A DNA stretch of 64,000 bases, taken from assembly GCA_965153285.1 (NCBI GenBank), contig OZ229115.1, one strand, 5' to 3'. Position numbers and translations under genes: made by a program. The notes below the pieces were generated by a model, which saw only the letters and a list, made by a program, of their open reading frames with translations, was not told the origin of the DNA and did no database searches. This stretch comes from Podarcis tiliguerta (taxonomy: Eukaryota). Shown piece by piece: positions 16,401 through 64,000 of the stretch (its first letter is position 1; every line of letters starts with the position of its first letter).

Positions 16401-17079
16401 TTTGAGACTCACAGATGAAGCTTCTCTTTCAAATCTGCAGGCAGAGAGAGAAAATAAAAGCAACTCGTTTCACATAAACAGATGCACATTTTATATCTAG
16501 CCAAAAGAGATTCCCCACATATTTTAGCTACTGTGAGAGCCGAATGCATTGAACACAGCCTGTTTGGCTAAAAATGGGGCTGAATGGTTCTAGCTGATTC
16601 AGTTAATTGGCAAATAAATGAGGAGTTTCTAGAAGAATGTGCTTCCCACAATTGCCTCAAATGATGTTTAAGACCTGCTTCATCACCTTCAAAATGTATG
16701 CACAGGCACAAAAATATACATTTGCAATGCTCACACAACAGCTGTACAGCTTCCCCTGCCCCACTTAGGGTACACATCTGCACCACAGAAAAGGCTTAAT
16801 GGCCCTTCCATTATCCCTGGCCATCGTCCCTGACCCATCAGTCTGGGGCTGATGGGGCTGCACCCAGCAATACCTTCAGGGCCAGAGTCTTCCTCATCCC
16901 TGCTGCAATACAAGAAGCTGCATGTTTTAATACCAACAATGAGCTAGCTTTTCCTATAGTTGCAAAGATAACATTTGAAGAGCCACGAAAAGCAACCAAG
17001 TGCCTTCACGGTCCAAATTAAGAAGCTGTCCAAATCTGTTAACGCCTCCAGAGACTTTTTGAGGAAGCAGGAAAAGAGA

Positions 17080-20877: not shown

Positions 20878-23800
20878 ATGTCTGATGGGACGTAAGTACA
20901 TTGTGTGCAATCTATATGCTTTGATTAGGATGATGGTTAAATAAAATAACAAAGTGTGCCAGTTGCTTGACATGTTGATTAAGCAAGCTTTATTACAGGA
21001 GAAACTCACAGAAATAAGATGGGAAGGGTAATTAACCTGATGCATTAAGGAATAAAAAGGCAGCAATTTGGCTTTTCTTTTTTCCTGATGATAATTTTTA
21101 TTAATTTTCAATTACAATCCAATAATAGCCTCATTTGCAACAATACCAAATTATAATACAATTACTAATACCAATCATTAAAATACTGGATTATATAATT
21201 TAGGTGGCCCCCCACATGCTAGATTTGATGGTTTGGTGGTTTTCTTTATTTCTGCGTTCCAAAATCTTCCTAATTTCAATTAAATTCTGGTTAAAATAAT
21301 CCCTTATACAACAACTGCAGTATTAATAACGTCTATTTGTGTTGACACATTAAATGATTTATAGAACTACAAGTGAGGCACTCAAACTATATCCTTGTTT
21401 TTCCTGTGTATGGCAATTATTCTGTTCGTGGTGTTTCTTCCTGCCCTTGTAAAATGTTATGTCTATCTTTCCCCATCATGCCATGCCTGGAGCTGATACA
21501 GTCATACCTCGGGTTGAGCATGTTTGAGTTGCACTCCGCGGCAACCCGGAAGTAACCGAGCGTGTTACTTCCAGGTTTCGCTGGTTGCGCATGTGCAGAT
21601 GCTCAAAATGATGTCACGCACATGCGCAGAAGCAGCGAAAAGCGACACGCGTGTGCGCAGATGTGCCGTTGCTAGCTAGTCAAGTTCAAACCTTAACGAC
21701 CTTTTTGCTGGTTCTGTTCCGCAGTTTATGATCTCATTTCTTCTAGCATGCACCTGTACTTTAGTCCGCAATTTCTTGATACAAAAAGGTGTGAAAAATA
21801 GAATGGAACTTTTTGATTGTGATTAGGAACATAAGCGAAAATTGGTGTAAAAAGCTTTTGTTGGATTTCTGGCAAAACAACCTGCAAAAACTAACTTGTA
21901 AGCCTTAGGTAATGGTCTTTCATTGGAAAGAGAAACAAGACAGGTGTGGCCTCTGATTCTCAACCCCCCAATTTACTGATGGTTTAGTTATAATAAATTT
22001 GCAATAAAAGAGGAATGAGATGAAAATAACTATGATGTTACGTGAAGCTTAGCAAACACTATTTGATAACAGAAGGGGATAAGCAGAAGATGGGTTAAAA
22101 AATTAATTTAAGTAAAGCAGAGTCTACAGTACATAAATAGTAAATTTTTTTGGAATTGAATCAGTAGTCCTTATTATTTGTCAATTATTGATTTCAAAAA
22201 CAGATTAATTATTGGAGGCCAATGAAAGACTTATTAGAAAATTGCACCTAAATTTTCTAACATGAAATAGTCTACTACGACAGTCCTGTGCATGCTTACT
22301 TAGAAGTAAGGACCACTGTTTCACTGTGGCTTTTCTCCAGGAAAGGTGTGCAAGAGATTGCAGCAAGGAAACCCCCCAATGTGAAAGACAGACACATTAA
22401 AATTCATCATTTTGAAGTTTGAAAAGATATTGTGAAGTAGCTAAGAGAAGAAGGGGGGGGGGGGAATGTTGAGGAGAAGACTTGGGTAAATGAACAGAAG
22501 TGAGGAGATTGGAAATTAAAGCTGTGATCCTATGCCAAATTATCTGAAAATAAGATCTGTTGATCAATCTGGGACTTTTGAATAGGATGGCATTCCTAAA
22601 AATACTATACTAAGGGAATCGGATATAAAAGAAATTCATAAAGCATCCCTGTTAACCTCTTTATGTTCTGAACAAATGGCTTTAACAACTGGGACAAAAA
22701 TATGGTTGTAGAGAATAGGAAGTGTTTCCATAATGAGCTAGTTAGAAAAAGGAAAGGATCTATTGGTGTTACATGACTATGCCATACTCAGAGTAGACTC
22801 AGTGAAATCAGTGGACAAATTAGTCATGAATAGACCCACTGAAATCAATAGACATGTCAGTCCCTCACTTCTGGCTGGAAGGACCACAGAATGGGGTTCA
22901 GAATAACTTCCTGTGATAGGATAACAAACCGATAGTCTGCCTGCATGTTTCAAACTCCCCACCTCCTCTGTGTTCTTTGGCAGATGTCTGCGCAGAAGAA
23001 AAGGTGCACCCGAAATAGAACCCAAAACTGATCTTACTCGCTGGCGATTCAGCTCCGTGGAAGGGCGGCAGAAATGGTACTACGTGGCAGACAGTGAAGA
23101 ATGTGCCCGTGAACAGAATGCACTAGAGGCTTACACTTTAGGGCTGGACACTGTAAGTGGCTTAATGATAACAGATGGTACAACACTGAAAGGCTACAAA
23201 AGGAGCCCAGGGCATGAGGACTGCTGGCTTGGCCCTGCCCAGCAGCAGTTTCCCAAGGGCTGGGTCATTTTTCTTTTGACTTCTCATCTTCTGACACCTC
23301 AGTTAGGAACACAGGAAGCTTGGTTATTGCTTTCATAGAACTGTGGAAGGGATCATGAGGGTCATCTCCCCCAACCGCCTGCCACTTGGTGCTGTACAAC
23401 TGCAACTTGATAATGTCAGGGTTGAATATGAAACCCTACTTGAAAAAAGACAAGCCTGCAAGATGAATATGACAATCTACAGGAAATACATAACTTAGCT
23501 ATCACAAAGTAGCTGCTCTGTGCTTGATACCTAGAAAGCTGAGTGAGTTCATCTGCAAGCCAGAGTCAGTGTAGGGTTCTTACCTGTGGAAAGGGAGATG
23601 GGCTACATGATCTTCGGGTCCCTCATATTCTATAGTTCTCTTATCTGAGAGCTCTGTGGTGTTCTCCTAGAGAACAGCCACTCTCTTGCTCTGTCATCAA
23701 TTTCCAATATACTGTGCCTAATAATCATTTCCATGATGCACAGGTGATGCATCTGCATGAGGCATTTTGATGTGCATGAAAATACTGAGGCACATGAATC

Positions 23801-26800
23801 CAATATGCAGTTTGTTAGGCCTCTGACTGACGGCTGGATTTCTAAACAGTTGTGATATCCCATTTTGTGAGATGTTGGCAGGTGTAGATTTCACTTGAGA
23901 TGTGTTTGTAAAACATAGTTTTGGAACCGTCTCTCAGGGCTAAACCATCCAGTACATTTAATGACTTTTTGTATTTAGCTGACTGTTGTTTTAAACCGAA
24001 ACAAGTTCATGAGGGCCCAGTCCGGATAGGGATTGGGGTGGGTGGAGAAGAAAGAGTTATCCCTTTCCCAGCCTGCCCATGTCTCCAGGCAAATAGCAGC
24101 TGGCGATGGGCGTTTCTTTGAGACTGCTGCTAGGAGGGGAAGTGTTAAATGACACCTCCCCATCTGCCATGGTCCCATTCCTGACCACCCTTCCCTGCTA
24201 TATTTATTTCTAAGTGACCAAATAGTTGCATGAAATGTAGCAGGACATTTAACACAATGCATACTTTGTCTTGTAGATAGTCTGTTTAGTTTTTGTACAT
24301 TTCTCTTACTTTTCCTATTTTGTTTTACAGAGCAAGTTCTTTCCAGATTTGCCCAAAGTTAGCACCGCCCAGGAAGCAGTCCAGAAAGCGATTCAATTCT
24401 TCTCTGGCCTGCAAGCGGAAGATGGCCATTGGGCCATGGAGTGCTCTGGCGTTCTCTCTCTTGCACCAGGTACATGGACACTAGTGGATTTACCACATAT
24501 ACATTAACTGGCTAAGGAGGACCTCCCTGTATATTTTCTATAAACTTGTTTATCTTCTTTTACCAGACAGACACAAATAGGTTGACATTTGGAGAAACCT
24601 CTTAAACTGAGGCCTTCTTTTAAGAGCTATTATGCAGTGTGTGAATGTTCCTCGCTCGAGACACTTCTCCACTCTTTGAAAACTTCTTTGATCTCAGTGT
24701 CATGAATGTCTTCTTCCATGCATGAGAGGCTAAACCTTGAACCCTCTTAATTCAGAAGGGAGTTTTTGTAACTAAGATATATATCCCTGTTATCTTCCAT
24801 CACTGCATAATTATTTCAGCTGACAGGAGTGTCAGGGGTCGACACTTAGTCTTCCATTACCTTCCCTGGAAGTCTGATCCCTGGAAGATGTGTATGTTCT
24901 TCAAGCCAGATTGCCTTGGGTCACCTGCCTGGGAAATTCTTCATTCTCAGAATTTCCTATAGTTAAATTTATATACATATTTAAATCCCTCTATTTAGGA
25001 AAACGAAGTCTAGCCTCTCTCACAAAGCAGAATACTTATTCAGTATATCCAGAACAGGGGGATAATCCATTGAATCCATTGTGCAGGATACTGTCCATCA
25101 ATGGCATCATACAGCTGTATGGAGATGTGGTAGACCAGATGATTTAAATTTTTTCTTCCCCTTACAGTTAATCTTAATTATTATTTTTAACTGTCTTTAC
25201 TGAAAAGTTTAATATTTCCTGTAAACCACTTAGCGGGATTATGTCACTGAAGTGGTATATAAATAAATAATAAAATTTGATTTGTGTGCAGATCAAGATG
25301 AGAGAGAAATTTGATTCAGTTTGCAGTTAAAGGTCTTATTAGCACTTTCAGAAACAGTTTGAGAACTGAAACACAGGCATTCTTTGAAGTTCGCTCTTCA
25401 CTGATTTTTGTAGTGCCACGTAGTGTGTACAATGGCGTATACTAGAGTAAAAACACAAATATTGTTATGTTTGACCTTTTTCTTCTGTTTCAAGATGGTA
25501 AAAACAAACGAACAATGGGGTACAAAAGCATAAGTTACGTTTCAATATCCAAACAGGCGGTTTATTGGCAAATCATACCAAAGTTAAGATTGTCAAGTAC
25601 TACACATCTTCTTCTCCTTTTTTAACCAAACAGCTATTTTGATGTCATGTTATGCTGCCAAGATCTCACTACCAGAAGAGGTTGAGAGAGAGCTCCTGCG
25701 CTACATCCTCTCAAAACAGCTTCCAGATGGTGGCTGGGGCCTGTAAGTAGTCCAAGGAGGGTGTGAGCTTCTCTAGAGTGGCCTGGGGAGAGATGTTCTA
25801 ATTCTGCATATCTTTGTCTTGGGCTGGTCCATGATGCAATTCCCCCATGAAGGCTTCTTTAAATCACTTCTGCATTCTGCTGTCTTTTGACTGTGAGCCT
25901 TTTATTTGCAATACTCACCATGTGAACTGGGCACCAGCGTAGATGACCAGAATGCAAGCTGGCCTCAGCATGTACTGAAGTTGCCCAGCTGTGGCGGAGA
26001 AAGATAGAATTCTGGCATGATGAGTGGAGAGAGGCAACAATAATGAAGATATGATATCTGACATAGCTATTGCCTTTGAAAAGCACCATCTTTAGGAAGT
26101 ATTACTATTGATAAATGGTGTGGTGAGGCCAGGTTGCCTCCATCCAAATGTAGCCTGTCAAACCACAAAATGGATTGGAGTTTGATTGAGCTTTGAATCT
26201 GAATTCTTAGTAGCATAGTATCAACTTTATTTAGCTGCAATGGAATTTCAACTGGTACTCAGGTTGTGTGAGCTGCTCTCAAGCCCATGCTGCCTCATGA
26301 AAGGAAAGATTTCAAAGTACCAAATGCCCTTCATTAAGGCATTACTTTTTTAAAAAGGTAATACCAAACAAAAGAAGGTATTCTGTGGTGCCCCGGCTAA
26401 TGGTTAGCTGACTGGGTATGGGTGAGGCAAATTCTCAGAGAAGCTTTTGAATTTAAGGTAATGCACCAGAAGAATGGAAACTAAACAATTCAAAGAGATT
26501 TCTAGACCTCTGGACTCACTGGTCCACTTTCTAATGGCTCTTTGATTTCTCTTTTCATGTAGCCACCTTAAAGAACAGTCAACAGTATTTGGCACAACCT
26601 TTAGCTACATAGCTATGCGAATCCTTGGACTTGGGCCTGACCATCCAGATGTAGTGCGGGCTCGGATAAATCTGCACAAGAAAGGTAAGGCAGAAATCTC
26701 CGGCAGGGCTGGATCAATCCATTTTGCTGGAATGTAGTGCCCAGGCAAAGCTGGGGGCCCTGATGTAGTTATTTGGGAGCATCTTCCTATTCTGTCTCCC

Positions 26801-28664
26801 GCCCTCCCTTCTTTTGTGGGTCTTTTTAGAAATCACCATAGATTGATCATAGAAATTGTGTCTATGTCCCAAATAGAAGATGCTGGTCATATCTTCCCTC
26901 CCATTTTCCCTTCTCTAAAATTTATATTGGGAACTCTTGGGATGGGGGACATGGACCTGCCCTTTTATGCCACTCCATAATGCACAATATACAGTGATAA
27001 AAATTTATTTTACTGTATTCTTTATTTTACTGTATTCTTAGAAATACAAAGAATCAGGTGAATTATAACCTCCCTTTTGCAGTAGCATTTTGCGGTGAAC
27101 CCCCTCTTAACTACTGCTTATTTTTTTTTTTTTTTGGTTTTATGAAGAAAACTCTCTGGTACTTGGAGACTTAGGAAGCTTAAGCATAGAGGTAGTGTTG
27201 GGTGGTATTAAATGTGGACACCACAGCAGTTCTTATACTCATGTCTCCTCCTGATATAGGTAAGAAGAAATCTGAAAAACCACATGCCATATGGCTCTCT
27301 CTAAATAATGAGAACAATCCTAGAAAAAAGAAAGCTAGGATTAAATGTCTTTGTCGTCTTCCTGTACAAAAGAGGGTCTTTCCAAGCACTATTTCCCTTT
27401 TCATAGTTTTGCAAAGTATCTTCACAGCAAGGCAATAATCGTATCTAGGTTTTCATTGTAAATTTATTTGGCTTTGTCCCCTTCAGTCTACAGAAGCAAA
27501 GATGTTGATAATTCTCTCTCCAGGTGGCGCTCTTGGAATCCCTAACTTGGGCAAAGTTTGGCTGGCCATTATGAATTTGTACAGCTGGGAGGGAATGAAT
27601 TCACCATTTCCCGAGTTGTGGTATGTGTCCGAAAGTTTACTGATCCCCACCCTACGCCACCAATCATGAAATCCCCCTCCCAATGTCTACAGTGTTACAC
27701 AGTAGACAAATTCTTTATTAAATAACAGTGACTTGGAAATTTAAATTAATCCATATTAATCTTCACCACTCTTACAGGTCCAAAGAGGCCTGGGCTAGTT
27801 CCAGTTTTTGAGGCCCCTAGCCATAAAAAAATAAAGATAAGAATGACAACTCTGGAAAACAAAATAAGGCACCAACAACATAGTGGGGGATTATTGCTTT
27901 GTTTGTTATTGTGTTATTGTGTTTTTATACTTTAAATTGCCCTGATCCTCAGATGAAGGGCAATATAACCTGCTTTTAGTGTTACCACTATATCCAGGAT
28001 TCCTGACATTGTCTTCCATGAACCTGTTTCTTCCTTCTTTCTGAAATAGGCTGTTTCCTACATGGCTGCCGGGACATCCCTCAACATACTGGTGTCACGC
28101 TCGCCATATCACCCTCGCGATGAGCTACTGCTATGCCACTCGCCTGACTATAGAAGAAGATGAATTGATCCAGAGTCTAAGACAGGCAAGGCAACATTCT
28201 CCAAACATCCCACCATCTTTGGTCAAAGTGGGACCCTCGTACTGCCTTGGATCTGCACTTGGGGGATTGCTTGCTTGTATCTGATAGGGAGAAGGCTAAA
28301 CTGGATGTCTTATTTTCCATTTAAGGCAGAAGTCGAGCTCAGAGCATTGGTGTTTCAAAATGCCATGGGAATATTTATTTTGGAGAGAGGTGGGAGCATG
28401 GAAACTTGGCCATCCCTATTCCATAGGGGAGGGCAACTTTGGGAGGGTAGAATTTGGAGTGGAGATGGTGCTCATGGCATCACCCTGCTAAGTCACATAA
28501 GTTTCTCTCCATTCATGCTATTATTTTAATTTATTTAAATGGCTCTGTGCTTCCTGTGCCACAAAGTATTCATTAACTCTTTGCCTCTTTTCGTAAAAAC
28601 TGGTGAACAACATCAATATTGCCTCCTACATCACTGTAATACCACAATCTCCCTTTTTGATGCT

Positions 28665-28703
<39 letters not shown>

Positions 28704-31700
28704 CTCCCCCCCCCCCTTTTGGTGTGGTAAAAGGAGCTTTCTTCTCCCCTCTTCTGTACTACCAGAAAAACAAATCAATGAAGAACTGTTGAACCATTAA
28801 TCTCCTATGTAGTACCCTTCTCTTTCTCATCTAATGTTTTATTTATTTATTAATAATTATTTATTATTTATTATAACATACTTTTTCATTTAAGTATCAA
28901 AATGGTGATGACTTAGACTATAGCTCATGAAAGCTGATGCCATAACACAGGGAGGGGAAAATGCTGAAATGAATTTGCTGGGGTTTTTTAAAAGATCCGA
29001 AATGACATTTGTCAAGTACACTAATATCCTGCTGCTTCTTTACTATGAAAGTCATTTCACTTCATGGTTTCCTTCTAGGAGATTTATGTGGAGGACTTCT
29101 CCACCATTGATTGGCCAGCCCAGAGGAACAATATTTATGAAGCCGATTTGCATTCTGCTCACAGCTGGATGCTGGATGCTGCTTTTGGTGAGTGATTTTG
29201 GAATTGGCAAGTCTTTTTCCAGGAGTTCAGGCCTCCAACGTAGGTTTCCTAGGGTTTAGTTGAGAGAAAGAGATTTCTGTTGGTATAGGCAAACACTTTT
29301 CATCAGAGGATATCCATGGAAACACACAACATTTTCCAAGTTTCATATTATCATATGTAGCAAGCAAATATTTAGCCAATTACAAGGACAAGGGATATTG
29401 AATCACACCGTGAAGACAGCGTGTGGGATCTCTCACACGATCTGAATTGTGATTTCTACCCCGCCCATTGCTTTTACAGTGTGAATTGGGATCCCCTGCC
29501 ATTGTTGATCAGTTAAGGAAGAACAAGATATGTAACTACTTGATGCAGGGGTGCCAACAGGATTATCTGGGTCCAATGCATTGTACCTTGATTGGGCTCT
29601 CTGACTCACTTGCCAAAGAGAACGCAGATCTGCATAAAATGTGTGTGTGTGTTGTGTAACATGCAAATTTGTGTCCTCTTTTGCAGGTAAGGTGGGAGGC
29701 CCACAAATGAAGAAGGGCATGTTTTGCTTCTTTACATTCTCATAGTTTGGGGGCCCTACTGATCCCAATGAGAGCTAGTGGGAGGGTCCTAGCAGCAGTT
29801 TTATGGCGCTTAATGACCCCCCCCCCATTTGCTTCCCAGTGAACCTTAAAATGATCAAACTGTTTCATTCCATTTCTCTAGATCTAACCTTGCCCAAGCC
29901 AAAGGAGAAAATCTGGCAGGGATTGTGATTTTGGCTCTTCAATTTTGGGGGTGGGGGTGGGTCCAGGGTGGAGGTTTGTTGGGAAAGATTTTGGGAGGGG
30001 ATCTGCAAAAGGTTCATGGAAGTTGGGGGTAAATGAAAAGAAAAAAACCAAATGACCCCAAACAACTGGTGCCCACCCCTTCACTGATCCCCCCCCCCAA
30101 AAAAAATCATATTTGAAATTAGGGGCTGAAATCCTGCCTCTGTTTTGAGCCAAAATATATTTCAGAAGCAAGTGCCATTGAATTCAATGGCGCCCTCTTC
30201 CAGGTAATTGCATGGAGGATTGCAGCCCCAAACACATGAGGAAGATAGAACTGCATTAACATGATTGCGATGTTCATAGTGACTCTCTTATTCCTTCTGC
30301 AGCTACCTTCAATTTGTATGAGAGATACCATTTCACCAGTTTCAGAAAGCAAGCCATTGCAGAAATGTATGAGCAAATCAAGGCTGACGACATATTCTCA
30401 AATGCCACCAATTCTAGCCCGGTAGGTCCCTTGTGAAGAAAAAAATTGTACTGGGAACAAATTCCTTTTGATGACAGCATATACTCATTCTCTTGAGGAA
30501 GCTTTGCTTCAAAAACCAAACAGAGAGCTATGTTTGTGGCAATCTTGTTCTGCCCGCTTGAGTTTCTGTGTTTGGCTGGTGAGATACAGACAGGTAGTCG
30601 TGTGGCAGATGAGAGTGCTAAGCATGCAGGTATTGCAGAGGGGAATTCCTAACTGTAATGATATTCTCTTTTGTCCTGCAGACTTGTAAAGCATTTCATG
30701 TGCTAATAAGCAGGTATGCTGATGGAGCCGATTCTCCAGCTTTTCAAGAACATATCTCCAGGATCTATGACTACCTTTGGTAAGCCTGGCATATTTATTC
30801 AAACCCATCTTTGTAGAACCCTGAACATGCTCTTGCATAAGTGTGCTTTTGCAGACCTGGATCTTTCCTCAAACCAAGGTCAATCAGACTAGGAAATGTA
30901 AATGGTGTGTACACCTGTGACAGCCGTAGTATGTGCACACATGAGCACAGATGCTCAGATGGCAGCTTCATTACTAGGAGTTCTGTGAGGGTGCGGGGGA
31001 CCAGCAATGGCATGCACACTCTGTAAAGATCTCTGCCTCTGATGTGAAACAACACTGTGCAAATGCAGCTTGCAGTGCAGTAGGAAAAAAAATCACCTTG
31101 TTGTGTTTTAAGCTGCATATGTGAACATATCCTTATTTGCAGCATAGGTGGAACTCAGAAAGGTGTCATGCACACCTGCGTCCCACTCATTGTGTTGTCT
31201 GGAAGAGATTTCAGGGAGATTTTGCTTTTTGGCTATTCTTAAAGCCTATTCTAGTCTTGTCAAGCCTTGGTCTCCTGTTATGCAATGAAGTTAGAGAACT
31301 ACATGGACTTGCGTCTGCTATAATCTCTGCTTCTTATATCTCTGCAGGATTGGACAAGATGGTATGCTAATAAAGGTACAGTAGTGTGGACCCAGATGTT
31401 GGGAATTGCCGTGGCCTGCAATTTGCATTGCTTTGGTGACTCTGAAGCTGAGTTGTCTTCTGCCTGCCTGATATCAAAATATCAGGAGATCCAGTCTTGG
31501 ATCTCCTGCATATAGTGTAGCTTCACCCCAGGATTAGGCTAGGAGGCAAGATGTAACATAACACAAGGTCATGTAGCACCTTTTAAAAATGCTGAACCAG
31601 ATATTATCTAATATGCTGAAAATCCAAAGACTTGTGTTGCTTAACTGAGTTTCAGTTCAGCAGAGAAGTTCAGATTTTTGCAAGTCATAGCTGCAGAACA

Positions 31701-34700
31701 AAGGGAAAAGTTCTTGAACCCAGGGAAATTGAGCAGTACAATAAAAAACAGGCAAGTAAACATGTGGAGGAGCCCTTTAATTACTGATTTATTCTTAGTG
31801 TTCTTGCTTTCTTTTTAAATAGTGCACTGGAACATACATTTTAAAACAGAAAATAAAAATGCGAAAAAACCAGTTGTTTAAGATCTCCCACAATTACCAC
31901 ACAATTCTGACCACATGAAATTCAGGGACCCCCCCCCTACATTTTCCCATCTTCTACTCAGTTAAGCAGGAGGCCTTATCACCGTTCCATGAGACATTCC
32001 AGCCCTTAAGGAGGGTGCAGAGCAAGGCCAGTGGGGGAGGGTGTAGGCTGGGAAGTGGGCATGACTGGGGAAGCATCCAAAGGGCTGGGTAGAGAGGACT
32101 GCCTTTAGATCCCAGGCCATTGGTTCTCCACCCCTGATCTAATGGACAAAACTCTTCTTCATTTCTTTATATCAGGTCATGGGATCACAGACCTGGGATA
32201 CATCATTTGCCATTCAAGGCTTCTTGGAGGTATCATTTTATATTGTCAAATCTTCTGCTTTTGTTCTCTCCACAATAATTTCCATTTACATATATATATT
32301 TTAGATGAATGAACTGGCATGTAGAGAGTGTGTATTCATTATTTAACCAAAGCACACACACTACAAGATCCGAACACCTCGTATGCCTGTCATGGTTAAC
32401 CAAGAAAGGCATGTTCTCCAGGTGATTCTTAGGACATGAGGTCCAGAAATCCACACACTGAGTATTCCTTTTGTAACACTGAAGTTATCCCTGAAGAACT
32501 TGCATTTATTTTTGTGGCTGTCCAAAGTGATGATTTTGTGTAAGTGTCTGAGATTTTCTCTGTGACTTTCCTGGGTCAGAATTCTTAATAATAACTTCTG
32601 TCTTTTTCTAGGCTGGGGTTCAGAACAATCCTGACTATGCGTCCTGTCTGAAAAAAGCCCATGAATTCTTGAAAGCCTCTCAGGTAAAGCACTGATCTTG
32701 GAATAACATACACAGGGAATCAATACCGCTTTCAGCTGTCTCAGCAAAAGAATTAGGAGTGAAACGCTTGTCTCTTTTTGCAAAGTAACATGAGCTCCTT
32801 TCATGTGTTACTCATCATGAGAAGGAGCTATTAGGTTATCAAAGGCAACGGGCCTATTTGACCTAGATGTTGAAGGGCAGCTTCCAAGGTTGTATGGTTT
32901 TCCCTAGCCCTGCCTCTGATATCCTTGCATTTAGACATGGATGCCTGCATAGGCATAGCTTAATGTGTGGGTGTTGTGGTCATGAAATGTTGTGCAACCT
33001 TGAAGGCAGAGCCAGAGTGTGGTCCAGCTGCCTCTTGATCACGTGAGATTCATTCAGCTGAATAATGTGTCATGGTGGGACTATAGAATAATACGTTTTT
33101 AATCTGAAGCCCATGTGATCCTTGACTGTAATGTCAATTCGGTTCTATAGTGTGGCTTCAGTCCTGTGTAAAACCTTGTATATCCACTGCAATTTACCTC
33201 AACCGACACTGTGGGTTGTACGCAGTATGAATCCTATTCAGAGCAAACCCATTCAGGTTAATAAACATGCCCAATTTGAGTTCATAAATTTCAGTGAGTC
33301 TGCTTTGAGTAGCGCTGGCACTGAACACAACCCTATGTGCTGCCATTGTATCAGGCTGTAGCCATATTCTGTCTTCTAAATTGCAGACCATATTTCCGAC
33401 TGAGTTAATTTATTTTCTATTGTTTATTAATTATTGCATAGCCCATCTTTTTTTCCGAGGAGCTTACTGAACTTTTCTTCCTCCTTACTGAATCCGCACA
33501 ACAACGCTGTGAGGAATTTTAGGCTGAGAGGAAGTAGGGATTGGCATCCTGGTCTCTCAGGTCCAACACTCAAACTGTTATGCCACACTGGCTTTCTCTG
33601 GTTATAAATATATTCTGATTGTCTTTTATTAATATGCTGCTAATCTGTTTTTCAGATTGTAGATAACCCACCTAACTACCAGAGATATTATCGCCAGATG
33701 AACAAGGTACATCCAGAATTGTGTCCTGTCTGTGTGACCCATAGCCAGCTAAAAAAGAGTCTTTAAGTGTTAATTCTGAGAACCCAAGGAGCCTGCTGGT
33801 TTAGGCCAGGGCCCATCTAGTCTAGTGTCCTGAAAAAGAAATATGGATCACCCGTCAAATCCCTGGTTGCTTTATTGGGATCTTTTTGGGAGGAGATGCC
33901 TCTACACTGACTGCTGCCCAAGGAGTCCTAATGTATTTTCTTCAATATCCAGGGTGGATTCCCCTTCAGCAATCGAGAGAATGACTGGATAGTCAGTGAC
34001 TGCACTGCTGAGGCCATGAGGACATTGATGCTGCTGGAGGAAAAATGCCCCTTCATAGAAGATCATGTGGCACCTCAGCGCCTCTTTGATGCTGTCAATG
34101 TGGTGAGAAGGGGGAAAGGCCAGAAGAGAAAATGGGAAGCAGGCAGGAGGAAGCTATTGTGGGAAGACTGAAGTCATCTAGCATTCAGTAATAGTGCTGA
34201 GGAGAATATTGGTTTTGTAGGACCGTAGGCTAAGAGAATTGGTGGAAGTGTCCCTATGGCAGCCTTGTATCCTCTGTGAAGGATGATCAGTCTTGAAGTT
34301 TGAGTTCCTTAAGCTCAGGTAAAGGGTTGTAACGTAGCAGGACTGAGAGCAATCTCCCTCAGTAAGCTGGATCGAAAGCTCACTGGGTATTAGGATTGAC
34401 AACAGACGGACTACTGATTTTGTTCATTGGAAAGTAGCTATTACATGCTTATGCTTTACTTAATCAATCTGAAGTCAAATATATAATGAGTTAATCTCTT
34501 TCCATATAGTGGTAATTTGGAGTTAAATCACATTTGATAGAAATACGCAAGTTAGCAAATTTTGTCCTGGAATCCTCATCATAGTCGCAAGGAGCAATGA
34601 CACTTTCTAGTGTTTGCTAGGAGAACAGAATCTTCCCATCCACTGAGTTCTCCATTTGCCTAATATGGTGAGAGAGGGCCAACTGGCACGACTACATATG

Positions 34701-37700
34701 TACGGAGAACCACTCTCCATTTGTTTAACTGCACTTGAAGTAAAAAGATTGGTTTTTCAAGGTGTGATTTTACACACCCCTATAATATTTGGGACTTTTT
34801 AGTTTAGGAAAAAATCAAGTGAAGTAAGGATAAAGGAGTGGCTGGTGGGGCTGGGCAGGAGCTACCAGCCATGTGCCTCTGCAGGCAGGACAAAGCACAC
34901 CATGCCCATTCTTAAACCCTTTGCCTTGCTCCTTCCCCAATCGCACTTGTAATTTTTTTTGCAGATGCTGAACATGAGAAATTCTGATGGTGGTTTTTCA
35001 TCTTATGAAACCAGGCGTGGGAGTTGGCTACTGGAGATAATGAACTCCTCAGAGATATATGGTAAGAACACAGCCTTGGTATCAGAACAACTTAAATGGG
35101 AATCTTATGTGAATTTCTGGTCATCTTCACAAGAAAAGTCTGTTTCATAGTATTGGGGATAGATGCCAAGTCATGCAATCACAGCTTTGTATGTGTGGGA
35201 GCTTTGGGAAGGCAGTGCAAGGGTTCTGGCAGCATCCCAGAGCCTTTGCGCCACGTTTCCCAAAGGTGGGGGAAGCACTTACTGGGCTTTGGGAAGGAGG
35301 CATGAGGGCTCATGCAGTGCCATTGACAGTGGCTGCCAATGAGTCTATGGACCCAGTTCAACATAATTGGTTTTCAACTACACCACATGGGTCTTGCTTA
35401 TTTTAGAAGCCACCTCTCCCAGGATGACCCTACCACCTCACAGCCTTCAGGGAGGGGACACATTACTTTGAGGGTATTCTGTTATGGACTGCATGCCAGC
35501 AGTGGGTGTGGCCAGAGCCAACTCTTCCTCCTTTTGCCACACCCTTTGCACGCCCGTTTTGCTGATTGGCTTTTGGCGGGTGAAGAGCTGGCATTTGACC
35601 TGTTGCTTTTATAAACTCCCCCCCCCCCCCGCTGTTTAAACTGCTAGGTTTGTGCTCCCTTTTAAAGGATATAAATCTGTAAGCCATCTTGAAAGTTAAC
35701 ATTATTGACTTTCTGTTTTTCAGCTGACTGTATGGTCGACCACACCTATATAGAATGTACTTCATCAGTTATGCAGGGATTGAAACATTTTAGGAAAAGA
35801 TTCCCAAATCACCGGGAAGATGAAATCAGGTAAATGTATGAGGGGAAATCCCTAGAAGCTGGGAATGATGTTAGTGTTACATTATAATGCACATATTCTA
35901 TATTCTAAAAAACTGTTTAAGGGTACTCTCATTTCCTTACTCATATTGAAATACTGCCCCTCAATGAGGACAAACTTAGATTCACAAAATGTTTAGCGGT
36001 ATGCGTACCCCTGTGTCCTCCCCAGAAAAAAGCACTGGGAAAATGTATATGTTACATAGCATGCATGTTGTTTCCAACATGGAAGTGATACTTTTGTGAG
36101 ATGTTCATCTCATGTACAGCTACTGCTGGTGGTGGTTTAGATATCCTTAAAGGCAGATGAGGAACACTCTTGATCTTAATCAGCAATCACCTGGTAGGCT
36201 GGGAGGACCTACTACTGGGTCACAGCCTGCTCTAAGGTGGGTCACAATAGCAACACTAACGTCGTCAAAACATTAAGAAGTGGACCAAAGTTACGAAAAA
36301 GTCGAAGGCTACTTCAGGCGGCTGAATGCCATTGTTACAAGGGACTTGGGTTAATTATTGTCTGTTTAGCTTGAAATGTAAGCAGACTCCTTTGTTTTTC
36401 TTCTCAGTGATACTCTAAATAAGGCTTTGCAGTACTGTCGTAATATGCAGAAAGCTGATGGCTCCTGGTTAGGGTGAGTGGCTTACAAATATTCTAAACT
36501 TGACTGTGGTACTGGTTGGTGTAGTTTCTGAATGCACACATAGCATTCTGAAAGTAGGACTTGAAAAGGTTGTTGATGGGCTGTGGAAACCTTCACCTTT
36601 CGAATGACTTTCCTGCACAACAGTTTGGCAGACTGCTGCCTTGTGTGGAATGTGACACACCTAGTGGAACTCTTGCCTTTAGTAGCATCCCTAGGCTGCC
36701 TGTTACCTTCAAGAAGGAGACCTCCAGAACTTCGTCTGATTCATCTGCATTTGCAGTCTGCAGTTTGTGCTTTCAGTATTCTGCAAATATGAAACATTTC
36801 TGCGATGAAGGGTAAAACACATGCACAGAATGGGATTTCTCACTTCCTACTGTAGAGGGTTGTGCTGCAGCCTAACTCTGTGCATGGAAAAGAAAACACA
36901 GGAGCATCCAGCCTATTTTTAGAGGTAATGGGATCCTAAACTGATGTGTAAAATGGGCAGTTTCAGAATATGACACCTAAGAGGGCAGTTGTGAATCTTG
37001 TTCACCACAAACAACTGATTGCTAGCATGTCTAAGGAGTGATTAGAGACCTGCAGCCTAAAATGTAGTACCAATATTCCGGTGTCAGCAGCTTGCTCCAC
37101 CCTCAGTTAATCTATGTCTGTTCTGAGGCAGGATTTTGTGACCGTTCAACTGAGCAGTCTTTTAACAATGTAGTTGCATTAGGTAGTTGCACAAACCTTC
37201 ACATTGTCATTAGGCTTAGAGAGAAAACATACCGTACTGTTGGTAACACCATGTACTGATCCCATGCTGATCCCTACATGATTCATCAGGAGTATTCACA
37301 CCATGAGATCTACAGCCACTAAGTAAAATAACTGGTTATATAAATTAGATCTAGTTAGAACAATAGCAAGCAAGGAAAAACGCACAACTAGTTATAGCAA
37401 CAAGAGATTCTGGCTCTGACCAGGAATTTCACTGCAGGTTTATGATGAATGAACTTGGCTCCATCCCTCCTTTCACTACTTTGAAGAGAGTCCTGTCTGT
37501 AGACGATAAAACTTTGAAAAACTGCCAGCAAGAAGAAACCTTCTCCTCATCTAGTTGTTCACTGTTTGGTGCAGCTAATGGAGGGATATGAAAGTTTTGG
37601 AAGAAATGCAGAAAAAAGCATAGCTGAGATAGCTCAGATGATAGAACATGGGACTAGAAGGATTCTTGCATTGCAGGGGTTGGACTAGATGACCCTCATG

Positions 37701-39986
37701 GTCCCTTCCTATGGTTCTATGAAACAAACAGTGAATGGAAGGGCATACTCAAAGGGTGTAGTCTGTCATTTATCTCAGTATCTTTCATTCAGCGGCTGAT
37801 GGGTTTTTCTTCCCTGACAGGCGATGGGGCGTATGCTTCACATATGGCACCTGGTTTGGACTAGAGGCATTTGCATGTATGGGATACATCTACCGTGGTG
37901 GGTGAGTAAGCAGCCTTTCGGGCAGAAGATTAGTATGAATGTTGCTCTGCTGGGAGCCCTTGATGGAGCTGAGCTTCAGGGGGGGGGGGGTGAAGTGGAG
38001 AGACCGTCAGGCTCCTCCACCCAAAATATCAAAGGCAGGGGAGTCATGTGCATATAATATTGATGCTTTGGATGCAGTCAAAGCCAACAGTGGAACAAAA
38101 CCCAATGAGGCATCTCATGGGCTATTTTTCTCTTTCCCCTCTCATCTTTTCTAGGGAGGCATGCAAGGAGGTGACCAAAGCCTGTGAATTCTTAGTCTCC
38201 AAGCAAATGGAAGACGGTGGCTGGGGAGAAGAATTTGAATCCTACAGGTTTCGCAAATATATTCAGCACACTGTTTCCCAGATCCACCAAACCTCCTGGG
38301 CTCTGTTGGGGCTGATGGCTGTTAGGTAAGCACAGAAGCTGGCAGTTACCTACCTTAGCAAAGGCTTCTGTCTGCTTTTGCCCAAGTGGTTTCTGCAGCA
38401 GCTAGACAAACCAATTAAGGCGTGCTAAAGAAACATGCTAACTTTTGTGAACTTGCAAAGGACAGAATTTTCCTGCAGCTTCATATGTAGATGTTCCCAG
38501 GTGCTTCTTAGTCCAAACAATTGAAATAATGCCAAACAAAGAGGCAGTTAAGGCTGTCTTAAGGACTGGGATGGAGGCCTCACAATTTAATTTCTTTAGC
38601 TGCTTCACTTTTTTGAACTTGTGTGAAGGACTCATGCACTTACAGGTCTTTCCACTAGGGGGACCCATTGAGTTTCTGTGAGCCCATGAGGGTTTCTTTC
38701 TTTTAAAAAGAAAATGTAGTCATATAAGCTCCCCAGAAGAAAATGTTAGGCTTTCCCTGCTGATAACAGAACTAATGACCAGTATTTTTGTGGCTTTGCA
38801 GATATCCTGATGTTCGGGTTCTGGAAAGAGGAATACAAGTTTTGATTGACAGACAGACATCGATTGGGGAGTGGCCTCAGGTGTGTTACAACTTTTAATT
38901 TCTTTTCTTAATCAAGTATCCTCATAGCAATATAATTTCAAGGTTCACAGAAACAGTATATTTCAGCCAGCTGTGAAATGGATCATGTCCTCCAAATATA
39001 TGTAAAATGAATGAATGAACGCAGAGCATTTCCCACCAAGTACTGAGAGTGGGGGTGGCTAAGTTGTTGCCTTCCAGCCTACACAGGCAATAGACAGGGA
39101 TGATGGGAGTTGCAATTCAGCAATATTTGGAGGACCAAAGGTTATCCACCCCTCACTTACTAAATGAGGCAGATCAGAATGTACTCTCATTGGCATTGTT
39201 GCTGTTATAAAGATGCTTCTCATAGATGGCTGCAATGTATTGTGGACACACATGGTCACTTGTGTGGCATTGGCAGGTGAGATCTTACAAGTGCTGCCCA
39301 TGTTCTCCCTCTATTGGACACTCTGATGTTCCTGTGGGAAGTATTCTGTTGCCTTAGGCACCCAAGTGATTCATGTACCTGTCTTGTTACTGCTGTGGCA
39401 TCAAAATGTGCCCTCAGGATTGAGTTTGTGTGGCATCAGAGCACAGGGCACAGCTGGCCCTACTGTTACATAAATGTGGCAAGTCAGAGGGATGCTTTTA
39501 AAAAGCCATAGACTGCCAGTTAATTATTTTATCTTTTAATCATGGAACCATTTGGATATTCTGCCTGAGATGCTACAATGTCTTTAGTCTCCTTTCCTAC
39601 ATTTTAATTGGCTCTGGTCTCTCATTCCTGCTTCCAGAGTCTTGTTTGCCAGCCAAAAGCTCAGTGATACTGTATGTGACAGTTGCTCTTGAAAGAGGTT
39701 GCAGTGATCATACAACCGGCTTCTCAAATGGAATTTAGTCACCATGAAGTCAGGACAGAAGACTGCATGTAGGTTGTTCAGGAATTTCTCTCTTGCCTCT
39801 CCTCAGGGTGACATCGCTACAGCGTTCTACAAAGCTGGTACTCTGCATTACAATGCCTACCGAATCATCTTCCCTATCTTTGCACTTGCCCGCTTCACCC
39901 GGCTATATCCCAGCAGCCCTGTCGCTAAAGGACTCCTGAAGAATGGTTCTGTGCATTCAGCGCAGAGTCAGAATGGAGGGTGCTGA
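20878..39986 (+). CDS. LSS-like: Oxidosqualene cyclase / lanosterol synthase-like, copy A (complete, 22 coding exons, 748 aa)
   Basis: Exons: 20878-20891, 22984-23152, 24331-24469, 25634-25742, 26563-26684, 27524-27620, 28050-28185 (GC donor), 29079-29187, 30303-30421, 30682-30779, 31348-31375, 32176-32229, 32612-32683, 33656-33706, 33953-34102, 34965-35061, 35724-35829, 36408-36473, 37821-37901, 38155-38325, 38802-38880, 39807-39986. Total 2247 nt, open frame from MSDGTCLRRR to QNGGC*. QW motifs (QAEDGHW, QLPDGGW, QKADGSW, QMEDGGW), YWCHAR, and catalytic WIVSDCTAE (D codon 33998-34000). Exon sizes and phases follow recalled human LSS except exon 2 (+3 nt), exon 12 (-3 nt) and a longer last exon. 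Confidence 0.95.
21085..21480 (-). mobile_element. L1-like 3' fragment in copy A intron 1
   Basis: Antisense T-rich tail and L1-like composition; absent from the homologous intron of copy C. Confidence 0.45.
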
Positions 39987-41787: not shown

Positions 41788-44700
41788 ATTGGTTAGGTCA
41801 GTCTTTATATAACCTTCAAGTATTTTATTGGGAGCGTAAATATTTTAGAAATTCTGGAACGTCCAAGGCAGGAACTCTAGCCCAGAGTCCAAGAGTTCAG
41901 TGTCCTATTCAGTGTCCTGTGTGCCTGTCTAGCAACATCTAAAATATAACCAGAACAATCCGAGACAGTCTTCTTCAACCCAAGATGATGTCTGATGGGA
42001 CGTAAGTACATTGTGTGCAATCTATATGCTATGATGGATATGCTAGGCAGAGGCATAGCAAGGTCAGGTGGTACCCGGGGTGGAATTTTTGTTGTCACCC
42101 CCCAAAAAAAGAACTACTTCCAACCTCCACCGTCAGTGGCGGTTTAATTCATTATTATTTATCTGCTGCAGATACTGATACCTATTTTCAACTTTCCCTC
42201 CTCTCTCTCAGTTTTGCAAAACGTTTATCAGTTTTTACAGTTCCTTGCAGAAGTGTTTTATCAAGCACTTTTCTTTTCTCTGATTTTATATCATGCACTT
42301 GTACACGCACATACAACTTTCATAGCAGTGTTAGAAAGGGGTCACATGAGCAGATTTTACATGTCTTGCAGTCCACTTTTATGCATGTCAGCTTGAAAAT
42401 AAATTTCACTTAGATAACGTGGCTTATTTATTTATTTATTTATTTATTGAATTTATATACCGCCCTATACTCTGATGTCTCAGGGCGGTTCACAGAACAA
42501 AATCACTTCTTGACTTAGTCCCAAGTGTGCATAGGAGACCAACTTTAAAATAAATTTTGAAAAAGCACCAGCAGGACACACCGTGGGGTGGGGGCTGGGA
42601 GGTGAAAAACTAGGAGGAGGAGGTGAAAAACTAGGTGAGGAGGAGGTAGGCCTTTCATAGGGCCTTACATGCATGCATATCAAAGAGGATTCAGAGCAAG
42701 AAGCCAAAGTATGACCATAATTTTTTTTATATCTTGTGAGCACATGAGGAACAAGATTTACCACCACAGCAGGTAAGTCTGTGTGTTCCAGTAGTGGCTG
42801 GCACCTGTTGGGACTGATAGGGTGGAAGGGAGGGAGCCCAGCAGCGCGGCACCAGAGCAAATGACAGGCAGAGCCAACTAATTCTAGTTTTGCCTTCATC
42901 CTCCTTCCCTGCTGAGTTTCACAAGAGACTAACGAAAGGAAGCTGGCACAACCAAGGCCACCCTCTGCACTGGATATTTGTAAGAAGGCAGGCAGGTGGG
43001 TGCTGGCTGATGTTGGTGGAGCACTGCCCCATTCAACCTGACACACCAACTTCCATTGCCAGTGTGTACTTGGTCTCCAGCAAGCAGAAGACCAGTTGAA
43101 TGTTCCTCTTCTGCTCCCTCGCCCTCCCCACCACTCCATTTTGCCTGAATGGCAGCAGAGATCAATCCGCTGGCAAGAGATGCCCATGTGTTCTATGGCA
43201 CAAAACCACTTCCTTTTGATCTCTAGAAATGTAACCCAAGATACCACTGTAGAAACAAAGACAAGTGTGCAAGGTGAATAGGTCAATCTACTGGAAATAC
43301 TGAAGTACCCAAGCCTGCAATTCTTACCTTTGGAAAGGGAGTTGGGCTTCATGATCTTCTGGTCCCTCCTATCCTATGGTTTTCTGATCTGAGAGCTTAG
43401 TCATGTTCTCCTAGAAAACAGCCACTGTCTTGCTCTCGATGATCAGTCTTCAATATACTGTGCCTGATACTCATTTCCACAATGCACAGATGATACATTT
43501 GCATGAGGCATTTTGATGTGTGTGAAAATACAGAGAAAGGCCTCTGACTGACTGCTGGATTTCTGAACTGCTGTGATCTCCCATTGATGTGAAGCATTGT
43601 GAGATGCTTGCAGCTGTAGATTTCAACTGAGGAATCATGGTGTGGTTGTAAAACATTATTTTGGAACGGTCTCTCACAGCAAAACCACCCATTACATCAA
43701 ACAACTTATTGTATTTAGCATGACTGTTATTTTTAACCAAAACAACAAGCGCAATCAGGATGAGCATTGTGGTAGCTGGAGAAGAGGAAGTTGCTTCTTT
43801 CCCAGCTTGCTGGTATCTCCAGGCAAATACAAGTAGCAGCTGGTAAGGGGCAGCATTTCATTGTGACTGCTTCTGGGAGAAGAAGTGTTAAATGACACCT
43901 CCCCATCTGCCATGGTTCCAATCCTGACTACCCTTTCCTGTTATATTTATTTTTAAATGACCGATCAGATGCATTAAATGTAACAGGACATTTAACACAT
44001 TGCATACCTTGTGTTGTAGATAGTGTTTTTAGTGTTTGTACATTTCTCTTAGTCTCCCTATTTTGTTTTACAGAGCAAGTTCTTTCCAGACTTGCCCAAA
44101 GCCAACACGGCTCAGGAAGCACTCCAGAAAGCAATTAAATTCTTCTCTGGCCTGCAAGCGGAAGATGGCCACTGGGCCATGGAGTGCTCTGGTGTCCTCT
44201 CCCTTGTGCCAGGTACAGGAACACCAGCATATTTACTACTTATATATTAACTGGCTAAGAAGGAACTCCTTGTATATTTTCTATAAAGCCGTTTATCTTT
44301 TTTTACCGGATAGACTAGGCACAAATAGTTGGACATTTGGAGAAACCTCTGAAACTGCTTAAACTAGTTTTGACTGTACCAAGCTTTGCATCAAAATAAC
44401 TACCGGTACCTTATCCCACTGGTCCATTCAACTGATAGCAACCCTCTGTGGTTTCCACAGCTCTATGTGGAGATGCCCAGGAACGAACTTGGGATTTTCT
44501 GCAACAAAGCAAAAGTTATCATTCTTTCCAATGAAGGCAGAATAATCTAGAAGAATAGACCTGTGAGTCTTTAGCTATGAAAGGATAAAAGAGATCTTAC
44601 CTGTGACCTTACAGCTAAATAGGTTTTTCTCTTCTTGGGTAAGCAGAGATGTTTATCTTATTCAAGCCAGTTCAGACTGCCTTTGGTCACATTTTTGGAA

Positions 44701-45860
44701 TATTCTCGAGTCTCAGAATTGCCACTAGTTAATGTTTTATCCTTTAAACAAAACAATTCACCCCTGTTTAGGAAAACTAAGCCTTTCTCACAAAGCAGAA
44801 TATATTTTCAGTACATTCTGAACAGGGGGATAATCCATTGAATTCATTGGGCAGGATATTGTCCATTGTTGGCATCACATAGGGGATGTGTGTGTTTTTA
44901 ATTTTTACTCTCAGTCTGAATTATCTATTGTTTTTATGGATAATTTTAATATTTCTTGTAAACCACTTAGAAGTTTTACTACATTGAATTGGTAAACAAA
45001 CAAATAAACAAATATATAAATATATAAATGTGATTGGCATGAAGATTGAGATGAGAGAGAGGCCTTATTAGCACGATTGGAAACAACTCAAGAATTGAAA
45101 CACAGGCATGTTTTGAAATTCACTCTTCGCTGAATTTTGTAGTGTAGTTCTCATGCCAAGTAATGTGTCCAGCTGCATATTCTAGACTAAGGTGTGCATA
45201 TAAATGCATTTATTCATGAAAATAACATCAGAAATGCATAGTATCAGGAAAATTGCTTTGCAAAAATGTGTATATTAGGATGGTGAATTTTCATGAGGAG
45301 TTTTCTTAAAAATCACAAACTGATGTGAAAAGGTGAACTGAACTTTGAAATGAAGAAGTGAGAGGAGCTGAATTCAGGGTCAGGTTTGTCCCGTGGCATC
45401 TCCTGATAGGACTGGGTAAGACCTCTCTGAATCCCAAGATGGACCAGAGAAGCCTGGCACCTGCAGTTCAGTAGTTCACCACACAGGGGAAGTGCATATA
45501 CCTCCAGGCAATCTCTGTAAGTAGCTTCTCACATTGAAAATTGCAGGTACAAATTATGCACCTTCAAGTAAAGTGACAGAAGCGATGATCTTTTGCCTAA
45601 ACTTGCTGGATGATGAAATATTATTATCCTTGACCTTTTTCTTCTGTTTCAAGGTGATAAGAAAACCCAATAGTGATACAGAAGCACAATATAATTTTTC
45701 ATATCCAAACAGGTGATTTAGTGGCAAATCAAACCAAAGATGAGATAGTCAAGTATTATAAATTGTTCTTTTTCTTTTTTTAATCAAACAGGTCTTTTGA
45801 TGGCATGCTATATTGCCAGGATATCATTGCCACAAGAGGTCAAGAGAGAGTTCCTGCGCT
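41788..45860 (+). pseudogene. Truncated OSC/LSS-like copy B
   Basis: Promoter block (ATTGG 41788, TATATAA 41806-41812). Exon 1 ATG at 41988 (extra in-frame ATG at 41985), ending 42001 with a GTAAGT donor. No exon 2: 42030-43280 is unrelated sequence and intron-2 homology resumes near 43280. Exon 3 44074-44212 is intact ([46 protein letters not shown]). Exon 4 starts at 45792 (GLLMACYIARISLPQEVKREFLR) and breaks off near 45860. Confidence 0.88.
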
Positions 45861-63920: not shown

Positions 63921-64000
63921 GTATCATTTGTCAAATCTTCTGCTTTTGTTCTCTCCACAATAATTTCCATTTACATATATATATATATATATATATATAT

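Follow-up and report, generated by a model that had tools for sequence, protein, structure and literature searches.

A tandem array of lanosterol synthase-like genes

We analysed 64,000 nucleotides of the Podarcis tiliguerta genome (contig OZ229115.1, assembly GCA_965153285.1; hereafter the window), which contain three tandem genes resembling lanosterol synthase (LSS): copy A is complete, only a stump remains of copy B, and copy C is intact up to the end of the window. They belong to a family of squamate paralogues that NCBI annotates as 'lanosterol synthase-like' and for which we use the label LSSL. In these proteins the MQGTNGSQ loop of LSS is shortened by one residue, the corresponding codon being absent from a 54-nt exon 12. 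The short exon is real and transcribed, and it is an ancient hallmark of an LSS-derived squamate paralogue family.

Copy A (20878–39986, plus strand) comprises 22 coding exons and encodes 748 amino acids in an intact frame, beginning with an ATG exon (20878–20891) and exon 2 (22984–23152) and ending with a stop codon at 39984–39986. Its exons were mapped with a snake relative (P0021) and a Capsaspora LSS (P0047), both retrieved by a one-exon query, and the full mapping showed that the loop exons had been numbered correctly as 11 and 12 in an earlier reading of this DNA (the original prediction). All splice sites are canonical except for a GC donor after exon 7; this donor (CAG/gcaagg) occurs in both long copies, at 28185/28186 in copy A and at 59730/59731 in copy C. 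The copy A protein is 98.5% identical to the NCBI 'lanosterol synthase-like' protein of Podarcis lilfordi (P0270), and this public sequence stood in for copy A in the work with Pfam, PDB and AlphaFold2 (AF2).

Copy C (49359–64000, plus strand) extends past the window; its exons 1–12 are intact and, save for the shared GC donor, have canonical splice sites. Of 398 compared residues, 31 distinguish copies A and C (92% protein identity); divergence is 5.8% in exons and about 20% in introns. Nonsynonymous (dN) and synonymous (dS) divergence amount to 0.038 and 0.147, respectively, and the resulting dN/dS of 0.26, together with the diverged introns, indicates that both copies are under purifying selection. 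The possibility that copies A and C are pseudogenes was ruled out by the intact frames, the dN/dS ratio and the transcripts described below. Copy B (41988–45860, plus strand) is a truncated fragment consisting of exon 1 (41988–42001), an open exon 3 (~44074–44212) and half of exon 4 (~45792–45860). It possesses neither exon 2 nor exons 5–22, and hence no loop exons, and was probably left behind by an unequal crossing-over within the array.

The junction of exons 11 and 12

In copy A, exon 11 (31348–31375, plus strand, 28 nt; ctgcag/G ATT GGA CAA GAT GGT ATG CTA ATA AAG/gtacag) encodes a segment ending in ...GQDGMLIK and closes with a phase-0 donor (AAG/gt), as read both in the window and in a spliced contig. 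It is followed by intron 11 (31376–32175, plus strand, GT..AG), which is about 80% identical to its counterpart in copy C, and by the 54-nt exon 12 (32176–32229, plus strand; tatcag/GTC ATG GGA TCA CAG ACC TGG GAT ... TTG GAG/gtatca), in which the codon for G380 of LSS is missing and T381-N382 are replaced by V-M. Across the junction, G380 is thus lost and Q379-T381-N382 become K-V-M, in a loop located between a β-hairpin and the W387 helix. The HMMER alignment with human oxidosqualene cyclase (OSC; 1W6K) shows exactly one gap at this point (dgmlik.vmgsqtwd / DGMKMQgTNGSQIWD). Copy C is organised in the same way, with exon 11 at 63091–63118 (...MGQDGMLIK) and a 54-nt exon 12 at 63867–63920, both on the plus strand. 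A (TA)n microsatellite lies shortly 3' of exon 12 in either copy (32290–32300 in copy A, 63955–64000 in copy C) and is longer in copy C.

The original prediction had reported an exon 11 ending in GMLIK, a 54-nt exon 12, the identical layout of copy C and the absence of a NAGNAG acceptor, and each of these statements held on direct reading of the DNA and, for the exons of copy A, in the spliced contig as well. In both copies, no AG is found three bases upstream or downstream of the exon 12 acceptor, and no GT occurs three bases past the exon 11 donor, so that a tandem splice site would be unable to restore the codon. Rescue by a NAGNAG acceptor or a tandem donor was thereby excluded from the sequence itself. 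The window contains no runs of N.

Contigs from public sequencing runs were compared with positions 30200–36100 of the window; these are assembled contigs, which do not reveal minor isoforms, tissue or expression level. A 2588-nt transcript contig from run X1 (2017) skipped the predicted introns, all of them GT..AG, with joints at 30421/30682, 30779/31348, 31375/32176, 32229/32612, 32683/33656, 33706/33953, 34102/34965 and 35061/35724. The spacing from exon 10 to exon 15 in contig coordinates was 205 nt, which equals the predicted sum of 28 + 54 + 72 + 51 and demonstrates that the 54-nt exon is present in the transcript. The transcript joins 31375 directly to 32176 and does not use another junction that would restore the length. 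Three of the joints were also seen in run X3, which stems from another organism and another study, so spliced transcripts are available from two studies. Furthermore, DNA contigs of two additional organisms (X6 and X9) contained exons 11 and 12 without any indel or substitution, while the adjoining introns differed. The idea that the missing codon merely reflects the assembly or the choice of exon boundaries can practically be dismissed: it is refuted by the spliced contig, which has exactly the predicted length, and both window copies, the DNA contigs of other organisms and the independent NCBI models of many species agree, whereas nothing was found in its favour.

Two intronic segments (35125–35320 and 35900–36040) stood out in all four runs by contig depths ranging from the thousands into the hundreds of thousands. 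They represent high-copy interspersed repeats, and the portion 35905–36038 recurs at 58680–58813.

Distribution and age of the shortened loop

Relatives were gathered by protein word searches and cluster look-ups. Among lacertids, LSSL was found in three Podarcis species, Lacerta agilis (three genes) and Zootoca; other lizards and amphisbaenians are represented by the agamid Pogona and by Rhineura, and snakes by Candoia, Crotalus, Protobothrops, Pantherophis, Pituophis, Erythrolamprus, Pseudonaja, Notechis, Naja, Ophiophagus and Thamnophis. The loop reads K-VMGSQTWD in about 25 annotated models from lacertids, Rhineura and at least eight snakes, with Q-VM or K-FI in single paralogues, and the Pogona member (Q-VLVPQTWN) is likewise one residue short. 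Canonical LSS, by comparison, carries MQGTNGSQ in the squamates Anolis, Zootoca, Elgaria, Eublepharis and Protobothrops as well as in turtles, birds, mammals, amphibians, fishes and sea urchins. The motif was present in 117 of 117 full-length canonical LSS that served as our reference, a set that had been chosen for containing GTNGSQ and DCTAE. As ordinary sauropsid LSS retains MQGTNGSQ and does not share the deletion, the deletion is confined to the paralogue.

Two annotated relatives, Lacerta agilis P0379 (XP_033007924.1) and Protobothrops P0387 (XP_029141446.1), exhibited a full-length KGVMGSQ loop, their nearest relatives having KVMGSQTWD. These two proteins are scattered over the family tree, which implies that the glycine was regained twice, by a recurrent 3-nt indel, or that the models are wrong. 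A NAGNAG acceptor or a GTNGTN donor is not possible as the source of the extra codon. The Pogona vitticeps member (P0406, XP_078249186.1) displays EGFW for DGHW, DGTGE for DCTAE and VPQ for GSQ in an open frame. In the turtle Mauremys mutica, a protein annotated as 'lanosterol synthase-like' (P0261) reads MQSTSGSQ, with residues 380 and 382 substituted and no deletion; since it groups with turtle LSS, it constitutes a separate, milder case.

In a maximum-likelihood tree, LSSL formed a single clade (support 100/100) whose stem is 0.53 changes per site long. The clade was placed inside sauropsids (84/85) and outside the clade of canonical squamate LSS (100/100), whose stem measured 0.10, so that the LSSL stem is about five times as long. 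LSSL proteins thus did not group with the LSS of the same taxa, and the tree of the family follows the species tree. Between lacertids and vipers, identity was 77% for LSSL and 82% for LSS, indicating that LSSL evolved only moderately faster after its stem. LSSL and LSS of the same animals share 61% identity, as against 77% for lizard and paddlefish LSS. The pattern is, to judge from the tree, one of a burst of change followed by constraint. A duplication of LSS in the sauropsid or squamate lineage evidently gave rise to LSSL, and the phyletic distribution indicates that the shortened loop has been kept since before the split of lizards and snakes.

The active-site pocket

P0270 matched the Pfam domains PF13249 (SQHop_cyclase_N, 5e-41) and PF13243 (SQHop_cyclase_C, 7.5e-58). 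Its AF2 model had a predicted local distance difference test score (pLDDT) of 87.8, and Foldseek superposed it on 1W6J and 1W6K with template-modelling (TM) scores of 0.94/0.97 and a root-mean-square deviation of 2.2 Å; the predicted fold is a double α/α-barrel. Domains, catalytic Asp motif and predicted fold together place LSSL in the oxidosqualene/squalene cyclase superfamily. The sole internal segments of the model with pLDDT below 70, residues 501–530 and 691–700, are rewritten in LSSL, and presumably they coincide with the channel-constriction loops of human OSC.

To compare the two families we defined a diagnostic site as one with a residue common to at least 95% of the 117 canonical LSS and found in no LSSL member. 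At 59 such sites the LSS residue is replaced in every LSSL. Replacements include D97E, Y98C, G99S, P101V, F103S/T, W192L, C233A, V236I, Y237T/L/M, I335S, G336S, C449N, F521Y, I524C, N697Y and I702L. In copy A, the rewritten Tyr98 loop is encoded by exon 3 (24331–24469, plus strand; compare DGHWTGDYGGPLFL), while exon 15 (33953–34102, plus strand) encodes the catalytic VSDCTAE motif (from 33995), in which D455 is kept, together with C449N. The proton donor D455 is retained along with C456, C533, H232, Y503, W230, W387, F444, V453, W581, Y587, F696 and Y704. D455, C456 and C533 are intact in the lacertid, Rhineura and most snake members, and the Thamnophis model has G456 and a gap at position 533. 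Among the diagnostic sites, 8 fell on 25 cavity residues and 51 on the 707 other residues, a sixfold enrichment (p = 4e-4) that is indicative only, being based on a cavity list attributed to Thoma et al. 2004.

In human OSC, Tyr98 reportedly forces the B-ring into a boat, and the substrate channel is said to be constricted by C233, Y237 and I524 together with loops 516–524 and 697–699. LSSL differs at each of these residues and loops.

Could LSSL nevertheless be a lanosterol synthase, i.e. a tissue-specific or regulatory isozyme in which the loop deletion and the other changes are offset or leave the product unaffected? The retention of D455, C456, C533, H232, Y503, W387, F444, W581, F696, Y704 and V453 would fit such an enzyme, as would the unchanged predicted fold and the existence of two relatives with a full-length loop. 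Positions 381, 449 and 453 separate lanosterol from cycloartenol synthases, and V453 is described as the best indicator of the lanosterol route among them (PMC2817430). When this signature (T381, C/Q449, V453) was examined, however, LSSL showed V381 beside the deletion and N449, and kept only V453. Moreover, the residues Y98, W192, C233, Y237, C449, F521 and I524, invariant in the 117 LSS, are replaced in all LSSL members, the stem of the family is about five times that of canonical squamate LSS, and in sea cucumbers a change of residue 444 alone alters the product (PMC9236903). We regard the isozyme as unlikely.

A second alternative is that LSSL has no cyclase activity, the family being in decay or serving a non-catalytic role, with the deletion as tolerated damage. 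The fragmentary copy B, the DGTGE motif of Pogona and the many database models that are partial or flagged as low quality point in this direction. They are opposed by the intact 22-exon frame of copy A, the intact 12-exon part of copy C and the dN/dS of 0.26, and also by the conservation of the loop and of DCTAE across lacertids, Rhineura and snakes, the spliced transcripts and the confidently predicted fold. Loss of activity is thus improbable in our view. The data show an expressed paralogue, maintained by selection, in which an active-site loop is consistently one residue short and the pocket is broadly rebuilt while the catalytic core is intact.

Comparison with plant dammarenyl-type cyclases

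The original prediction had likened the shortened loop to that of plant enzymes acting through the dammarenyl cation. MQSF-GSQ is indeed found in β-amyrin (BAS), mixed-amyrin (MAS) and lupeol (LUS) synthases, and MQGYNGSQ in cycloartenol synthases (CAS) (PMC4346913). In addition, the P0270 loop could be aligned by HMMER without a gap to 8J5Z, the cryo-EM structure of the Tripterygium friedelin synthase TwOSC1 (loop segment DGMKVQSFGSQLWD, longer stretch VAEDGMKVQSFGSQLWD). The published table and this alignment corroborate that the plant β-amyrin and lupeol synthase loop is one residue shorter than that of CAS and LSS.

We therefore considered whether LSSL might form a chair-chair-chair triterpene from a dammarenyl cation, having converged on the solution of plant β-amyrin, lupeol and friedelin synthases; this would be a special case of a non-lanosterol product. 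Apart from the equal loop length, LSSL and 8J5Z share F84, E97, V101, I131, H528, S536 and L702-H703, and both have lost Tyr98, to which the B-ring boat is attributed. The plant loop contains the pair Ser-Phe, however, where LSSL has Val-Met. The MWCYCR/MLCYCR motif is missing from LSSL, which has YWCHARH with H232 kept, whereas 8J5Z has IWCYCRM. Unlike both LSS and LSSL, 8J5Z carries Tyr at H232, Trp at Y503 and Leu at V453, and at I452, where LSSL is LSS-like, it has Gln. According to approximate counts read by eye from the HMMER alignment, 8J5Z has the residue typical of LSS at ~25 of the 59 diagnostic sites, W192, C233, V236, Y237, I335, G336 and I524 among them, and matches LSSL at ~7, the rest being unique to LSSL. 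Furthermore, plant dammarenyl-type OSCs descend from plant CAS and LSSL from animal LSS. The parallel with the plant enzymes is, at the level of the alignment, real but local: it concerns the Y98 loop, the T381 loop and the LHY segment and does not amount to a general approach to the plant enzyme. A dammarenyl-type product accordingly appears rather unlikely.

From the proposal of convergent shortening, the identical loop length thus survives, while the residues differ and the resemblance is local. The deletion had also been called the strongest single hint of a changed product, which is doubtful, as Y98C and the substitutions of C233, Y237 and I524 are equally telling or more so. As to a changed product class itself, the deletion on which it was founded is real, transcribed and paralogue-specific; the suggested resemblance to dammarenyl-type enzymes held only locally.

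Proposed function

We consider it moderately probable that LSSL is an active oxidosqualene-type cyclase that makes mainly something other than lanosterol. The loop change would have arisen on the long LSSL stem, together with the replacement of many otherwise invariant cavity residues, while the proton donor Asp455 with Cys456 and Cys533, the His232-Tyr503 pair, W387, F444, W581 and F696 were retained. The reshaped pocket might then fold or terminate the cation cascade differently, or it might admit a different substrate. The shortened loop would be one contributor among several, and possibly not the decisive one. The more far-reaching proposal, namely that squamates hold a dedicated LSS-derived triterpene synthase, some 150–200 million years old, which makes a non-lanosterol scaffold with the loop as a determinant, has in our estimation a slightly less than even chance of being correct.

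Several observations weigh against a changed product. Since KGVMGSQ occurs in two annotated relatives, loop length may be dispensable. The Pogona member, whose catalytic motif is damaged, may be in decay or may serve some other purpose; of copy B just a fragment is left, and a good many of the database models are incomplete. The spliced transcripts come from assembled contigs, and minor isoforms are possible. Finally, the retained H232, Y503, F444 and V453 would, taken alone, be compatible with a lanosterol-like termination. The retention of the His232-Tyr503 pair in particular argues for termination near C8/C9 (protosteryl-type) or for an incompletely cyclised product.

Vertebrates are generally credited with one oxidosqualene cyclase, which yields lanosterol as its only product. 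A paralogue that is conserved, expressed and amplified in tandem, and that combines the catalytic acid with a rebuilt pocket, suggests that lizards and snakes make a triterpenoid not yet recognised; speculatively, it might function in the lipids of skin or glands, in signalling or in defence. If a non-lanosterol product were borne out, LSSL would be the first vertebrate enzyme to cyclise oxidosqualene or a related epoxide to a non-lanosterol scaffold. Given that the same indel splits sterol-type from amyrin-type cyclases in plants, LSSL would represent an independent natural replicate, and the deletion is an easy target for mutagenesis that would allow the effect of loop length to be tested directly. 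The genes are already in the databases as 'lanosterol synthase-like', and our full-text literature searches returned no discussion of them: neither a paper on squamate LSS paralogues nor unusual triterpenes linked to them was found.

Relation to known cyclases

With vertebrate LSS (human 1W6K), LSSL shares about 60% identity, the same Pfam domains and, by prediction, the same fold, as well as DCTAE, the H232-Y503 pair and the cation-stabilising residues W387, F444 and W581. It differs from vertebrate LSS in forming a separate clade on a long stem, in the loop shortened by one residue, in T381V and N382M and in the 59 replaced sites. The genomic surroundings appear to be different as well, going by the neighbourhood of LSSL, the one that was read. 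On the minus strand, a 497-amino-acid open frame (14970–16463), which contains the core and anticodon-binding domains of a class II aminoacyl-tRNA synthetase and fits PARS2, stands head-to-head with the array at a distance of ~3–4 kb from the first ATG exon.

In CAS, the homologue of residue 381, Tyr410, steers hydride shifts and deprotonation together with the homologues of Y98 and Y704. The changed loop residue of LSSL is the homologue of this Tyr410, which, as part of the Y410/H477/I481 triad, is a proven product determinant. CAS has a full-length loop with Tyr, whereas LSSL combines a short loop containing Val-Met with N449 and the LSS-type V453.

The sole animal precedent found in the literature searched is provided by sea cucumbers, whose parkeol and lanostadienol synthases are LSS-derived tandem duplicates with a new product (PMC9236903). 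There, one cavity substitution (L or Q for F444) accounts for the altered product, and LSS itself has been lost (PMC9236903). LSSL resembles these enzymes in occurring as tandem duplicates, three of them in the window, and in forming a clade derived within vertebrate LSS. Unlike the sea cucumber enzymes, LSSL keeps F444 in all members and has many cavity residues changed, and canonical LSS coexists with it, as seen in Zootoca and Protobothrops.

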